Shown here: positions 61,458 through 88,484 of the stretch, one piece after another
Position numbering within the stretch: the first letter of the stretch is position 1
Layout: every line of letters starts with the position of its first letter
Source: Octopus vulgaris
Taxonomy: Eukaryota
DNA length: 124,000 bases
Direction of reading: 5' to 3'
Assembly (NCBI GenBank): GCA_951406725.2
Contig: OX597818.1
Coordinates: forward strand, 27,920,001 to 28,044,000
Position numbers and translations under genes: made by a program
Notes under the pieces: generated by a model
Told to the model about the DNA's origin: nothing
The model's database searches: none
The model's input: the letters and a program-made list of their open reading frames with translations, nothing else

Positions 61458-61499
61458 GCACTGAAGATTATTATGCAAGTATTTCAGAAACACTTGACA
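61458..61499 (+). CDS. Cytoplasmic cassette exon B0 (TEDYYASISETLD)
   Basis: cttaaag acceptor shared with other B exons, gtaagt donor, 42 nt, phase 1-1. Confidence 0.8.
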
Positions 61500-61806
61500 G
61501 TAAGTATAATTAACACCAAATAATAAATAGCTTTATATTTGATATTGGTTTTAAAATTACTAACCTTCTACCATGAACATTGGTAGAAGGTTAGTAATTT
61601 CAGGGGAGAGGAAATTCAATTTCATCGACTCCATTACTCAACCTGTACTTTTTTTAAAACCCTGGAGGAGTGAAAGGCCAAGTTGACCTGAGCAGAATTT
61701 GAACTCAGAACATGAAGACAGACAAAATGCTGCTAAACATTTTGCCTGGCATGCTAAAGCTTCTGGCAGCCTGCCTCCTTAGTTTTATATTTGATATTAT
61801 TTTATA

Positions 61807-62165
61807 CATATGTATGTATGTATGTATGTATGTATGTATGTATGTATGTATGTATGTATGTATGTATGTATGTATGTATGTATGTATGTATGTATGTATG
61901 CATGTATGTATGTGTGTATGTATGAATGAATGTATACTTGCATGCATGTATATATGTGTGTATGCATGTGCATGTATATATGTGTGTGTATATATATATG
62001 TATATGCATGTCTGAATATATCTTCCTCTATCTATCTATCTATCTATCTATCTATCTATCTATCTATCTATCTATCTATCTATCTATCTATCTATCTATC
62101 TATCTATCTATCTATCTATATATATATATATATATATATATATATATATATATATATATATATAT
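61807..62165. repeat. Compound microsatellite (TATG)n-(TATC)n-(TA)n; representative of dozens of (TA), (TG), (TATG), (CAT), (AAT) tracts across the window
   Basis: Direct reading; other examples 371-455, 16637-16770, 56885-56998. Confidence 0.95.
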
Positions 62166-65100
62166 AAGACTTTCCAAGGAGTTTCTATAAGTCAGAAAAG
62201 AAGAGCATAATTGTATATTTTGTATTCCGTGTTACTAATTTTGTCTTATAATAGCCAGTTTGTGTTACTCAATAATTTCACAACAAAATTTCTACATTAA
62301 AACGAATAATTTAATACTCATTACACATTAGACATGGAAAAGTATAGCTTGTGATCTTTCCAACTGAATATTTAAATAACAATATCTGTCAAAGTGTTAT
62401 AGAGATGTTGGGAAAAAAAAAAATCAAAGCATGATGGAAATCACACAGTCAAAAAGCAAATTTAGCCTTCAGCCACATTAGAATTATATTCCTTGGACTG
62501 ATCTTTTTAGGCATTGCCCCGTAGGCTAGCTTCAATTGTGTATGGAAGTGTGAAGTGGGGAGCAATGTTGTGATATAGAGTGTAGGGGAGAGGGAATGTG
62601 GCATTATCTCCACATGAGCAACCTGCTCCTGTGTTTGGTTTGGATTGCTTTACTAAAATTTGCTTTTTGTTTGTGTACAACTTAAAGAAACCCTCAACGT
62701 GTGTGTGTTGAAAATTTTTCTGTGCTTATGCATCTGTGGAAAATTTTCATTAATCTAATGAAGACATGAGTCAGGCTATCCTGATGCTATCCTTGAAACT
62801 GTTAGTAATCAAGGCTTCGTTATAATATAGGACTGCCTTGTCAAAGATCTTACAGGAAATTGTGATGAAGATCCTTCTGCAAACACCCTTCATATGGTTT
62901 TTGTTAACTATGGCTGGGTGGCAGGAAGTTGTGTTAATATAAGTCAGTTTTGTAGTTGCTTTCTGGAAGAGTTCAAGAGAATTTGTCCAGGTGTAATGTC
63001 ACACCTAGGAAATTAATTATTTTCAAATTTGTCTCTATAGTAATTTTGAGCTCAAGGGAATTAAGAGCAGGGAAAAGTCTTTCCTGAACCTATTGAAGTT
63101 GTGTCCATTTGCCCCTTTTCATAACACCAAAGCATCAGCCCTCTATAGACCAAAGGGGATTTTCTTGTGTGTCTAGAATCAATAAGCTCACATATGTTAT
63201 CACTGTCAGAGGCTCTCACCACCATATCGAATGAACCTTCTGAGTCAGTTTGCTTGACCTCTGCTCAACTTTTATTGAAATAAAAGATTTTCCTGGCATG
63301 CATAATTTTACATTGGTCTAAGGCCTCACCTTGGTTCTACAAAAGAATCATGTATATACCATTATACAATATATGTTACATGTTCATTCATGGAAATAAC
63401 AAAAGAGACTGATTTTAAAATAACTGTGGGACTTTATTCTTTTGCATTAACTGAATCGGGGGGGGGGGTCCAGGATTTTTTTTTTGCGTTGCCCCAAAAG
63501 TTTCAAAAAAATACTATATAAGGGTAGAAATCGTAATTCGTAATGAATGGACACATTTTTATGCATTCTAACTTTGTTGTAGCAGACCATATGCATATGA
63601 AACAGTAATGCTGTGAATAAAATCATGATGTTATTATATTTGCAACAGTGCAGTGAGTGTTGATTTACCTAAGGAAAGTAGTGGCAAACTAGAAATGTAG
63701 TCTACGGAATAAGATGCGTAGAAGGTGCTTATAAAGACATGAACATGACATGTATAGGGAAGACATCTAGGAGCATTGTATAAAGACTAAATGAACATTT
63801 GAGACAATATGATGACAAAAAATAGTCCTCCATACTCCACCAACATGTCAAGGACCAACATAGAGGCAACCTAGATCAACTTGACAGCTGCATTTTATCC
63901 AAGCACCTGAAGGACCCAACACTCAGACAAATACAGGAGTACGTTCTCATAAATGAAACATCCCCTGTACTAAATAGGAAATATACGTAGTAGATAATCA
64001 TACCCCTATACCTACAGTTTATATTTATATACAGGTAGTTAGTGGGCTGTTATGTAGATGTATGTATGTGTGTGTGTGTATGCACATGTATGTAGGTAAA
64101 TGGATATGAAAGTAAACAGATAGACATACTGACGGATAGGTACATAGGTAATATGAACAGACAAGCACACATACACACACATACGCAAATGAAGACTGAA
64201 ATGCACGACCTTATACACACACACACACACTTCACTTCACACAAGGACACATATGGAGACACACGTTCACACATATGGAGATAGACATCCATACATAGAG
64301 ACACAGTACATAGTCACAAAAACCCAAGCAGACACACACATACACACTCAGACATGCACACACAAGGAGACAGAGGTACACACACACACACAGACAAAAC
64401 ACAAACGCCAAAACACACCCACCCAAACATATGAATATGTAGAATACATTCAAACGTACACACATACATGTATACATGTACACACATATACATACATGCA
64501 TACACACACTTACATGCATACATACATACATACATACATACATACATACATACGTACATACATACATACATACATACATACATACATACACACATACATA
64601 TACATAAATGTGTAATGGTGTCTGTCTGTGTGTGTGTGTTTGGGGTTACTCTAACTCCTCCCACACCGTCCAACCGATTTTAATGATCTTGGCACATAGG
64701 TAGATCACCCTAACCTCTTCTACTCCAACCCACCTCTAAAATGGGGTAGCCATATATTTCCTCTATAGAAAGACACCAGTGCTTGTTTCTCTATTATATT
64801 TTAGCCTTTTAATACCTGAAGCACCCACTACACTCTCGGAGTAGTTGGCGTTAGGAAGGGCATCCAGCTGTAGAAACTCTGCCAGATCAAGATTGGAGCC
64901 TGGTGCAGCCATCTGGTTCGCCAGTCCTCAGTCAAAATCATCCAACCCATGCTAGCATGGAAAGTGGACGTTAAACAATGATGATGATGATGATGGTGAT
65001 GAAATCAAGCTACACCTCAAATACTCTCTACTTAGTAGCGAGAGATTTTACTTTTTCATTTTTTCCATGTTCTTTTTCTGTCTTGCAAGTTAACCAGCTA

Positions 65101-86015: not shown

Positions 86016-86944
86016 TATATGTATGATTGAAATTAAAATTTTGAAACTTTGAAAATTTCATTGCACATACAATAAACTTGTTGCTAATATTCATATGTAG
86101 CTCTGATATTTTACCCTTTTACTAATCTACACCCTTCATAAGCATATATCTTGTAAGCTTTATTTATACTAATATAGGTGCAGTCATGGCTGTGTGTTAA
86201 GAAGAGCTTGTTTCCCAACTACATGTTTCCAGTTTGAGTTTCACTGTGTGGCACTTTAGGCAAGGGTTTTCTATTATAGCTTTAGGTGAACCATAGTTTT
86301 GTGAGTGGATTTGGTAGATGGAAACTGAAAGAAACCCTTTATATGTATATATATATATATATATATATAGTATTACATACATATAAGAGGGAATTTTACC
86401 ACTATGTGGAAACCCTTAAGAATTGTTTCTAGAAAATTTAGCAAACACCAGAAATGTAAGTGAGCAAGACAAATGAAAAGTAACAAAAATATAGATTAAC
86501 CATAAACAAATGTTTCACTATCAATAAATTATGTAATTTTACTTACATAATTTATCTGTAGATCTTCAGTATGATCGTCTATACAAATATAATTTGCAGA
86601 ACTACACGCCAGACATCAACACGGGGTCGAAAATGCATGCAGTTCTACCTATTACATTTGTGGTTATTTTTCAAAAGTCTTCGTTTTAGCGTGCTAAATT
86701 ACCGGAAATAATACTGCATAAAATAATTCATTGCAGTAGCCTCTGTCAGTTTGAGAACGTATTAATTTAAAATTAAAATTAAAATGAGAGTGAAAAATTG
86801 GATATTAATTTGAAAATATCAATTTTAACACCAGTGGTCTAGCATATGTATGTAATACTATTTACTGAACCTCAGTTTCTTATATGCTAGACCACTGGTG
86901 TTACAATTGATGTTATCAAATTAATATCCAATTTTTTACTGCAA

Positions 86945-88315
86945 AGTTACAAAGGTTGGCAACAAGGGTATCAATGATTTCAGTGTACAGTAGGAGTCCA
87001 CCGTGGCTCTGATCTCAGTCCCACTCTTGTTTATCTTAGTCCTCCAGGCCTTAACATAGGAATCAAAAACCTGCTGTCCCTGGGAGCTCCTCTACACTGA
87101 TAATCTTGTTCTTATAGCTGAATCACTACCTGACCTAGAGAATGAATTTTAGTGTGGAAACAAGCCTTGAAATCTAAGGGCCTTCCAGTTAATTTAGCAA
87201 AAACCAAAGTCTTAGTAAGTAAGAAAACTGACAAATTACAAGACCCCTCTTGGAGATGGTCCTGTCCAGTATGTAAGAAGGGTGTTGGTAGAAATTCCAT
87301 ATAATGCACCTAGTGCAAACATTGGACTCATAAGTGGTATAGTGGCAGCACAGGAAAGTTAACAGAGAATATAATCTTTGTGTATGGCAAATGCTCAAGT
87401 ACAATAACTGTTAAAAATACGCGGACAATAAGCTCCTTCAAATGCTCGATGGGGTCATTAGAAGTAGTAGATAGCTTCTGTTACCTAGGAAACCGAGTTA
87501 GCAGTGGAGGGGAAGTTCTGAAAGTGTAGTTGCTAGAATAAGAATAGATTGGGCAAAGTTCAGAGAGGTTCTACTTTTGTTGGTAACTAAAAGCCTCTCC
87601 TTCAGAGTAAAAGGCAGATTGTATGATGCCTATGTACGTACAACTATGTTACATGACAGTGAAATAAGGGCTTTGACTACGGAGGTCTTGTGAAGGCTTG
87701 TAAGAAATGAAGCTAGCATGCTCTGCTGAATGGGTAGTGTCGATGTGCATGCATGACAGTGTAAATAATTTAAGAGGAAAACTGGGTATAAAAGGCATCA
87801 GATGTGTGCAAGAGAGAAGGATGTGCTGGTTTGATCATGTGATGTGTGCAGATGAGGAGAGCTGCATAAAGAAGTGCCAAGCTCTAGTTGTGGAGTGTAC
87901 CTTGTGGAGGGTACCTATGGATTGAAGTGGTGAGAGAGGATCTTTGGATGCTGGAACTTAATTGGGAAAGGACAAGGGACTGAGAGATGGGGTAATGTAT
88001 TGTACTTAGTAAGATGTATCAAGCTATGTAAAATCACTATCTTCCACACATACAGGCTTGTCCTTGCCATTTAAAAAGTACTTGTGCTGACTCAACACAC
88101 CCATGCTTGTGCTGCATAAATGCACCCATGCTGGTAGCACATAGTAAGCACTTAGCACACCCTGTTAAGTTGTTGGCATTAGGACAGGCATTCAACCATA
88201 GAAACCATACCACAACAGACAGTATGGGTTTGGAGAATTCCCTGATAGCCAGCTCTATGTCAAAACGTCCAACCCATGCCAACATGGAAAGCAGATGTTA
88301 AATGATTATGATGAT
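86945..88315 (+). mobile_element. RTE LINE 3' fragment, degraded
   Basis: RT C-terminal remnants and family 3' UTR. Confidence 0.8.
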
Positions 88316-88438
88316 GTTATGTATAAAATATGCACTATATTTCATTATCAATTTTAATTACCTTCTGCACAACATCAAAATAGTTAAAATACACTCTCAA
88401 ACTGTAAATATGCCTGTTTTTTTAAAAATTTCTTGAAG

Positions 88439-88484
88439 CTGTTTAAGTTTCAATATGCTGGAGTTAGTGTTCCCAAATATGTAT
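88439..88484 (+). pseudogene. Degenerate A-type exon copy A4 (in-frame TAA, 1-nt insertion, shortened)
   Basis: tcttgaag|CTGTTTAAGTTTCAATATGCTGGAGTTAGTGTTCCCAAATAT aligns to A1-A3; TAA directly after the first full codon; gtatgt/gtaagt donors retained. Confidence 0.75.

Follow-up and report, generated by a model that had tools for sequence, protein, structure and literature searches.

A tandem array of symmetric tyrosine-motif micro-exons in the probable cytoplasmic tail of an octopod immunoglobulin-superfamily receptor

The SH2 domains of signalling proteins have established specificities for short phosphotyrosine motifs: pYxN is bound by Grb2-type adaptors, pYxxM by the p85 subunit of PI3K and pYxx[I/V] by domains of the Src/Syk/SHP type. 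DAP10 and CD28 carry YxNM motifs in their tails, and a 16-aa insert in ErbB4 holds a YxxM site for PI3K p85. These 16 residues are encoded by a cytoplasmic cassette exon (CYT-1/CYT-2) that switches signalling coupling (PMC2993754). In PECAM-1 (CD31) short cytoplasmic exons are alternatively spliced, and exon 14 is a 19-aa cassette with a functionally decisive tyrosine (PMC2132561). The CD22 tail carries several tyrosines of different kinds, one of them in a YxN site that binds Grb2 (PMC5302901). Among invertebrates, the FcoR proteins of Botryllus form a lineage-specific family of the immunoglobulin superfamily (IgSF) with several tyrosine motifs per tail, and splicing swaps ITIMs (immunoreceptor tyrosine-based inhibitory motifs) and hemi-immunoreceptor tyrosine-based activation motifs (hemITAMs) (PMC12582321). 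The tail of Dscam in the shrimp Penaeus monodon is made of many small exons, seven of which are included or skipped to give at least 384 tail isoforms; some tail exons carry predicted SH2-binding tyrosines, exons 36 and 37 are near-duplicates and the terminal exons choose the stop codon (PMC6851185). The immune and cell-recognition receptors of cephalopods are almost uncharacterised. Here we describe a locus in a window of 124,000 nucleotides from Octopus vulgaris (100% identical to assembly GCA_951406725.2, contig OX597818.1), in which the interval 61458-88484, counted from the first nucleotide of the window, probably holds the cytoplasmic-tail exons of a single-pass type I IgSF receptor.

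The original prediction for this interval was of eight intact 42- or 60-nt exons, all phase 1-1. All eight were found on the + strand at 61458-84693 and are open in phase 1-1, and a six-frame scan placed every quoted motif on the same strand at 61.4-84.7 kb; all exons described below are on this strand. The micro-exons are of three types, each consisting of an acidic stretch and one or more tyrosine motifs. The A-type exons (42 nt; consensus xTEDxYATI) are A1 (TEDYYASISETLD, YASI, 61458..61499) and A2 (VDGGYATILSEPS, YATI, 65449..65490). The B-type exons (42 nt; consensus [D/N]MD[D/G]xY[V/I]N[V/I]SxKP) are B1 (MDDTYVNFSKKPD, YVNF, 71613..71654), B2 (MDGDYVNISKKTG, YVNI, 77608..77649) and B3 (MDGTYINVSKKPA, YINV, 84652..84693). 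The C-type exons (60 nt; consensus VEEQ[Y]AE[I/V]SEP[K/R]YLxM) are C1 (VEDQYAEISDPKYLCMRLP, YAEI and YLCM, 72658..72717), C2 (VEKQYAEISEPKCLEMKQR, 77304..77363), in which YAEI is kept and the second tyrosine is changed to cysteine, and C3 (VEEQSAEVSEPKYLEMEKR, 84353..84412), in which the first tyrosine is lost and YLEM is kept. Together they do carry 10 tyrosines in three motif classes: YASI, YATI, YAEI (twice), YVNF, YVNI, YINV, YLCM and YLEM, and the extra tyrosine of YYASI.

The micro-exons are all phase 1-1 and their last base is always A or G. No junction between them can therefore form a stop codon, whichever exons are joined: all the codons that arise are sense codons, and any subset can be skipped without a frameshift or a stop at the junction, as had been claimed. 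The splice sites had been described as good. This is true of the donors, which are strong GTAAG sites in all eight exons (the weakest is that of B1, GTAAGC), and a pyrimidine-rich tract and an AG precede each exon; the acceptors, however, are all of the weak AAG form, with A at position -3. The combination of weak AAG acceptors and very short exons would therefore suggest that these are regulated cassettes. We scanned the window for open exons between 27 and 120 nt long that have a GTAAG donor and in which 12 or more of the 20 nt before the AG are pyrimidines. The scan gave 25 phase 1-1 candidates on the + strand of the whole window, nine of which represent the eight micro-exons (one is counted twice, as a nested variant). 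As there are only 25 candidates in 124 kb and the micro-exons form three paralog families with conserved flanks, the array is not a product of chance.

The array arose by tandem duplication of two genomic units: the A exon, and the C exon together with an intron of about 240 nt and the B exon. Behind C1 there is a remnant of the upstream flank of a B unit (72833..72961; blastn, 77% identity to the B3 flank) from which the B exon itself has been lost. A ninth, frameshifted C-type copy (C4, 88439..88484) has given the interval its end coordinate of 88484. It is a 46-nt pseudo-exon with a 1-nt insertion, it reads A-V-stop in phase 1, and it lies downstream of the first terminal exon (T1, see below), within the intron of transcripts that end in the alternative terminal exons T2 or T3. 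If spliced after B3 in such transcripts C4 would add Ala-Val-stop, so it could act as a poison exon or as an alternative end. In the 58-92 kb segment a generic repeat finder detected little besides microsatellites and a 66-nt satellite and did not return the exon families, which were found by targeted blastn. Two stretches next to the B and C exons are nearly unchanged among the paralogous units and between species: the 40-50 nt immediately upstream (ttatttatagccatgctatttgttc... for B, ctccaaacaataaatatgcc... for C) and the initial ~25 nt beyond the donor (for example 77560-77607, 84605-84651 and 72610-72657). These flanks could have a role in the control of splicing, or could merely be duplicated sequence of recent origin.

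Upstream of the array there are five exons for immunoglobulin (Ig) domains and one transmembrane exon, and all six share phase 1-1 with the micro-exons. The first receptor exon in the window (6890..7201) matches isoform X1 of the Octopus bimaculoides gene LOC106874069 with 83% identity in a tblastn search. It is followed by a C2-set_2-like Ig exon (12210..12530), by the exons Ig3 (20902..21156) and Ig4 (22966..23220), and by a membrane-proximal I-set exon (25220..25528; Pfam I-set 8e-15, Ig_3 7e-16). A Pfam search with the ectodomain gave Ig_3 (6.8e-16), I-set (8.4e-15), Ig_2, ig, V-set and C2-set_2, and every one of these hits passed its cut-off. A hydropathy scan of the exon at 26477..26578 (EIMEVPLRIIIGCTVGIVLLIILGLLIYKCHKKR; 92% identity to the ortholog) showed a single hydrophobic segment, LRIIIGCTVGIVLLIILGLLIY, followed by the basic sequence KCHKKR, as expected of a transmembrane segment. 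By synteny with O. bimaculoides, the first two coding exons, which encode the signal peptide and one further Ig domain, lie upstream of the start of the window. The ortholog has a hydrophobic N-terminus, and the Ig count is five exons in the window and one upstream in the ortholog. No FN3 domain was matched in the Pfam search and the 9Ig-4FN3-Ig-2FN3 architecture of Dscam is absent.

Ig3 and Ig4 are consecutive exons with GC donors. The Ig4 donor (GCAAGT) is conserved in O. bimaculoides, where it is used in the RefSeq model. The Ig3 donor is GCGAGT and the orthologous site is GTGAGT; this is therefore a derived GT-to-GC change in O. vulgaris, which might weaken splicing of Ig3.

Between the transmembrane exon and the micro-exons there are two further tail exons, which were revealed, together with T1, by mapping the O. 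bimaculoides protein onto the window; all three had been missed originally. One is of 19 nt (VKHNKK, phase 1->2, 32819..32837), with its ortholog at about 53002 of the O. bimaculoides locus (L001). The other is of 77 nt (DAVGTNPLEDVHMVSIHGINASLAG, phase 2->1, 49766..49842) and is present in all eight ortholog isoforms. Because of their phases, neither can be skipped singly. T1 (GKIRQNLWDDLIYV, then stop) is at 85983..86026, with ATTAAA at 86032 and AATAAA at 86071 (45 nt downstream).

The receptor gene is collinear with the O. bimaculoides locus; where blocks of the syntenic introns can be aligned, their identity is about 83-94% and in most cases near 90%. When the spliced window model was used in a protein search, it found LOC106874069 with 78% identity over 100% of the query, and also a set of Octopus and Argonauta paralogs. 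The gene in the window is the O. vulgaris ortholog of LOC106874069. The RefSeq models of O. bimaculoides join the transmembrane exon to the micro-exons, and in X1 the order is transmembrane exon, 19-nt exon, 77-nt exon and micro-exons. The claim that the micro-exons belong to an Ig receptor is thus supported both by these models and by the five Ig exons and the transmembrane exon upstream.

LOC106874069 has eight RefSeq isoforms, X1-X8, which are identical up to the tail. Exon A (14 aa) is absent from X4 and X8, exon C' (20 aa) from X5, X7 and X8, and exon B (14 aa) from X3 and X6; no isoform lacks exon C or exon B'. By alignment of the flanks, A2 is orthologous to A, C1 to C, C2 to C', B2 to B and B3 to B', so that A2, C2 and B2 correspond to cassette exons and C1 and B3 to constitutive ones. 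The isoforms have two alternative tail ends, GKISQNFWDDLIYV-stop and DYQ-stop. The second of these (D-Y-Q-stop, in X2, X6 and X7; L001 98384) corresponds in the window to the alternative terminal exon T2 (100669..100677), which reads D-Y-stop: CAG in O. bimaculoides is TAG in O. vulgaris. The region around T2 is about 87-91% identical between the two species over 0.7-1.35 kb. The paralog LOC106879981 also shows variation of this kind, with an isoform X5 that lacks one B-type exon and an X3 with a GYQ-stop end.

In the O. vulgaris annotation the locus is represented solely by a 123-aa 'hypothetical predicted protein', which uses exactly these splice sites to join A1-A2-C2-B2-C3-B3 to T3 (DSHCEKKH, then stop; 91485..91510), an alternative terminal exon that is used only by this model. 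The model omits B1 and C1, and this is the one instance of skipping seen in the window, at the level of annotation. Its first coding exon (21666-21723) is within the Ig3-Ig4 intron, and the model is therefore at best partial. T3 is just downstream of long open frames in which Pfam found no domain. The annotation pipeline drew alike on Iso-Seq, RNA-seq, alignments of proteins and ab initio calls (PMC10700109), and any of these may stand behind the 123-aa model. The Ig and transmembrane exons are apparently unannotated, as the protein search returned no O. vulgaris model of ~100% identity. The O. vulgaris annotation splits the receptor gene and misses the link between receptor and tail.

Cassette-exon choice, as it had been proposed for this locus, is therefore supported only at the level of annotation, by skipping and by two ends in the isoforms of the ortholog and of LOC106879981. 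The accompanying figure of up to 2^8 combinations is overstated. Expressed orthologs are found for only five of the eight exons (A2, C1, C2, B2 and B3), and two of these orthologs are constitutive; the orthologs of B1 and C3 are dead and none was detected for A1. The figure is an upper bound: for the sister species, annotation supports three cassettes that are skipped independently, combined with two ends. The docking/selector type of mutually exclusive splicing that is known from Dscam was also considered and was dropped because isoform X1 contains all the cassettes together.

Comparison of the two species shows that exons are born and die within the array. B1 and C3, both intact in O. vulgaris, have decayed in O. 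bimaculoides: the counterpart of B1 is a pseudo-exon of 37 nt and thus frameshifted, and that of C3 has lost both the AG and the GT and has a 5-nt deletion. No counterpart of A1 is detectable at the syntenic place in O. bimaculoides, although in the paralogs the first A exon is usually of the A1 type (GTEDNYATISDEAL). O. bimaculoides has an extra A-like exon which is intact but unannotated. The five expressed micro-exons have 0 indel columns between the species, in comparison with about 9% gap columns in their 150-nt flanks. Among paralogs the B and A exons are likewise gap-free and the gap fraction of their flanks is 4-26%. Paralog identity is only slightly higher in exons than in flanks for the C type (78.5% against about 73-74%) and the B type (81% against 71-75%), but in the A exons it is 61.5%, which is below that of the flanks (65-69%). 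Across the family the YxN and YLxM cores are conserved, and the motif positions were counted. In the B-type exons, which follow the pattern [D/N]-M-D-[D/G]-x-Y-[V/I/G]-N-x-S-x-K-P, the tyrosine is present in 26/29 and the asparagine at +2 in 28/29, and in the C-type exons the second tyrosine, that of P-[K/R]-Y-L-x-M, is present in 20/21 and the methionine at +3 in 16/21, counts in which the search pattern itself partly anchors the positions.

The tail has putative docking motifs of the Grb2 type (YxN) in B1, B2 and B3 and of the PI3K p85 type (YxxM) in C1 (YLCM) and C3 (YLEM); the corresponding sequence in C2 is CLEM. The assignment of the motifs to Grb2, p85 and SHP/Src, which was part of the original prediction, is made at the level of the motif and is best read as a list of candidate partners. 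On this basis a mechanism can be suggested. Clustering of the receptor would allow a Src-type kinase to phosphorylate the tail tyrosines. The pYxN motifs of the B exons would then recruit a Grb2/Drk-type adaptor, the pYLxM motifs of the C exons the regulatory subunit of PI3K, and the YA[S/T/E]I motifs of the A and C exons SH2 proteins of the Src, Syk or SHP type. Exon choice would set the number and the mix of docking sites per receptor. We tentatively extend this to an octopod IgSF family in which tandem arrays of symmetric micro-exons, of 10-20 or more units in some paralogs, serve as a splice-selectable 'barcode' of SH2-docking sites. Cell-type exon choice would set the balance of Grb2 : PI3K : Src/Syk coupling, exon birth and death would rewire the output between species, and the ITAM-like pair A1-A2 would be switchable by splicing. 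In this full form the proposal is doubtful, and we would not be surprised to see it fail.

Several points weigh against the proposed tail and its mechanism. All of the isoform evidence consists of annotation models (Gnomon; EVM/PASA); the tail-only protein search returned two annotated models and no transcript-derived fragments. The 123-aa model is odd in having its 5' exon in an Ig intron, no transmembrane exon and a terminal exon in sequence that is maybe repeat-derived, and it could rest on protein alignment rather than on transcripts. The 183-aa tail has no match to the ITIM ([I/V/L/S]-x-Y-x-x-[I/V/L]), position -2 being D, G or P, nor to the immunoreceptor tyrosine-based switch motif (ITSM, T-x-Y-x-x-[V/I]) or the strict ITAM (immunoreceptor tyrosine-based activation motif, Y-x-x-[L/I]-x(6-8)-Y-x-x-[L/I]). 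Nine of the ten micro-exon tyrosines also fit the more general YxxPhi (Y-x-x-[LIMFV]). The motif tyrosines are unstable: the YAEI of C1 is replaced by DAEI in O. bimaculoides, and C2 and C3 contain CLEM and SAEV, respectively. At 91.7%, the substitution identity of the exons between the species does not exceed that of the flanks (93.5%), and constraint on the micro-exons is weak. The ratio of nonsynonymous to synonymous substitution rates (dN/dS) of the five expressed exons is 0.55 (14 nonsynonymous and 6 synonymous changes), which is not significantly below 1. As this value is non-significant and is the same as in the Ig exons (0.48), we do not count dN/dS as evidence of constraint.

Some of the looser motif definitions were also considered. 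With the broad ITAM spacing (6-12), there is one match, YASI-x10-YATI, which forms when A1 is joined to A2; the second tyrosine is lost in most paralogs. No strict hemITAM (acidic triplet, G-Y-x-x-L) was found in the tail. There are four look-alikes, [D/N]-x-D-[D/G]-x-Y-x-x-[I/V/F], which have one extra residue and no leucine. Scans of the tail for NPxY, PxxP and dileucine motifs were negative.

The turnover of the array raises the possibility, unlikely on balance but a real one, that only A2, C1, C2, B2 and B3 are genuine exons and that A1, B1 and C3 are young, unspliced debris of duplication which happens still to be intact. The tail would then be far less combinatorial. Consistent with this, the B1 and C3 orthologs are broken and the search for an A1 ortholog was negative; the donor of B1 is the weakest of the eight and no annotated model includes B1; C3 is without its first tyrosine; the unannotated A-like exon of O. 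bimaculoides shows that intact copies can go unused; and the dead copy C4 is nearby. However, the annotated O. vulgaris model contains both A1 and C3, and A1, B1 and C3 all retain length, frame, AG and GTAAG. As the A1-type exon is standard in the paralogs, A1 is old rather than new.

The fit of the tyrosines to YxxPhi, which is the AP-2 signal, leads to a different explanation of the tail. The motifs could function mainly in the unphosphorylated state, as sorting signals that bind AP-2 mu2, in which case the protein would be an endocytic or scavenger-type receptor and exon number would tune the rate of internalisation or sorting and not the choice of SH2 proteins. Nine motif tyrosines match (YASI, YATI, YVNF, YAEI twice, YLCM, YVNI, YLEM and YINV), and the lack of an ITIM, ITSM or strict ITAM in the tail is in keeping with such a role. 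We consider it distinctly unlikely to be the main function, in view of the residues that are kept around the tyrosines: the asparagine at +2 of the B exons (28/29) and the methionine at +3 of the C exons (16/21) are needed by the SH2 domains of Grb2 and p85 and not by a generic YxxPhi, and acidic residues upstream of each tyrosine are typical of kinase substrates. Additionally, sorting and docking roles can coexist.

It is very improbable that the micro-exons are a separate transcription unit for a short cytosolic or membrane-anchored adaptor-like protein, as the 123-aa product without Ig or transmembrane exons and tail-only short models in other octopuses (P0045, whose 155 aa include a hydrophobic segment at the N-terminus, as well as P0047 and P0048) might suggest, because the orthologous RefSeq models splice from the transmembrane exon through the 19-nt and 77-nt exons into the micro-exons, all of these exons are present, intact and phase-compatible in the window, and the 5' exon of the 123-aa model in the Ig3-Ig4 intron looks like a prediction artefact. 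A cytoplasmic tail assembled from these micro-exons is thus the reading that we prefer.

By sequence comparison the receptor gene appears to be restricted to octopods. A search of 1.84 billion cluster representatives with the tail of the O. bimaculoides ortholog gave only 18 matches. The source was looked up for four of those with E-values of 1e-14 or lower and for P0046, and all of these are Octopus proteins. Pfam found no family in the tail alone. A sequence search of the PDB with the ectodomain returned generic I-set relatives (titin, contactin, VEGFR and FGFR) and no specific family, and a literature search found no published description of this octopus receptor family. The gene belongs to a clustered, fast-evolving, octopod-only IgSF family, and in the tails of paralogs the array grows to well over a dozen units.

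Some members and models of this family differ from the gene described here. Two distant members, P0010 and P0015 (O. vulgaris and Argonauta hians), have D-V-x-x-L-Y-A-K-V-N-K-P repeats instead of the A/B/C array. Their C-terminal ends carry a CxYAEL...TIYAD[L/I] pair with the look of an ITIM plus an ITSM, and the family may therefore include members of a putatively inhibitory type. Two O. vulgaris models named 'adhesion G-protein coupled receptor G6-like' (P0034 and P0049) end in A/C/B-type micro-exon sequence, after which come translated intron (KYLNHTLQTINMPFILF, a stretch that is conserved upstream of the C exons) and then reverse-transcriptase-like sequence. They are probably chimeric gene models that fuse a neighbouring family member, but could alternatively reflect real exon capture by a different class of receptor. 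In P0045, P0047 and P0048 (Octopus spp., 100-173 aa) a hydrophobic N-terminal segment passes straight into the tail sequence of the micro-exons. Such models could be fragments, or transmembrane-adaptor-like genes built from the same exon modules.

The introns of the gene contain several kinds of repeat. In the C1-C2 intron there is a tandem array of seven 66-nt units (74997-75461; 74-82% identical to the reference copy), and single related copies are found at about 83788 and at 89369-89473. The array looks like part of a dispersed repeat that is common to many places in both octopus loci. The large introns are full of retroelement remains (34704-37384 on the - strand; 51383-53050 and 3824-4327 on the + strand), which include a non-long-terminal-repeat endonuclease and reverse transcriptase, a 556-aa open reverse transcriptase frame and a GIY-YIG (Penelope-like) fragment.

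In this octopus receptor the modular, variable part is the signalling end and not the binding end. If exon choice does change the adaptors that are recruited, the gene would be a compact natural case of signalling output encoded by micro-exon arrays, and the family would be a candidate receptor set for octopus hemocyte or neural biology.

The locus had been contrasted with Dscam, on the grounds that its diversity is intracellular and that of Dscam is in the ectodomain. This contrast is misleading, since the shrimp Dscam tail itself has seven exons that can be skipped, some of which carry SH2 motifs, as well as a choice of stop exons (PMC6851185). The octopus gene and crustacean Dscam are alike in being invertebrate IgSF receptors with a tail made from small skippable exons and with alternative ends. 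They have no sequence relationship, however, and Dscam combines 9Ig-4FN3-Ig-2FN3 with hypervariable ectodomain exon clusters, whereas the octopus gene has Ig domains only and its annotated isoforms are without alternative ectodomain exons. In addition, motif exons of three types recur in a regular array in the octopus tail, in contrast with the heterogeneous tail exons of Dscam. PECAM-1 is likewise a multi-Ig type I receptor with short cytoplasmic cassette exons, but its tyrosines are in ITIMs, of which the octopus tail has none, its tail exons are not a paralogous tandem array, and no homology between the two is seen beyond the generic Ig fold. ErbB4 differs in having a single cassette and in being a receptor tyrosine kinase; the octopus protein has several such cassettes and no kinase domain. 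The swap in Botryllus FcoR is achieved by intron retention or alternative ends in a few genes and involves canonical ITIM and hemITAM sequences, and the families are unrelated. Unlike the YxNM of DAP10 and CD28, the B motif of the octopus tail is YxN[V/I/F], and the tail is without the ITIMs of CD22/Siglec tails; the resemblance does not imply homology. The principle of tail cassettes with SH2 motifs is thus already known from shrimp Dscam, PECAM-1 and ErbB4, and the octopus locus stands out by the regular tandem arrangement of its motif exons, which are of three paralogous types, and by the speed at which the array turns over.

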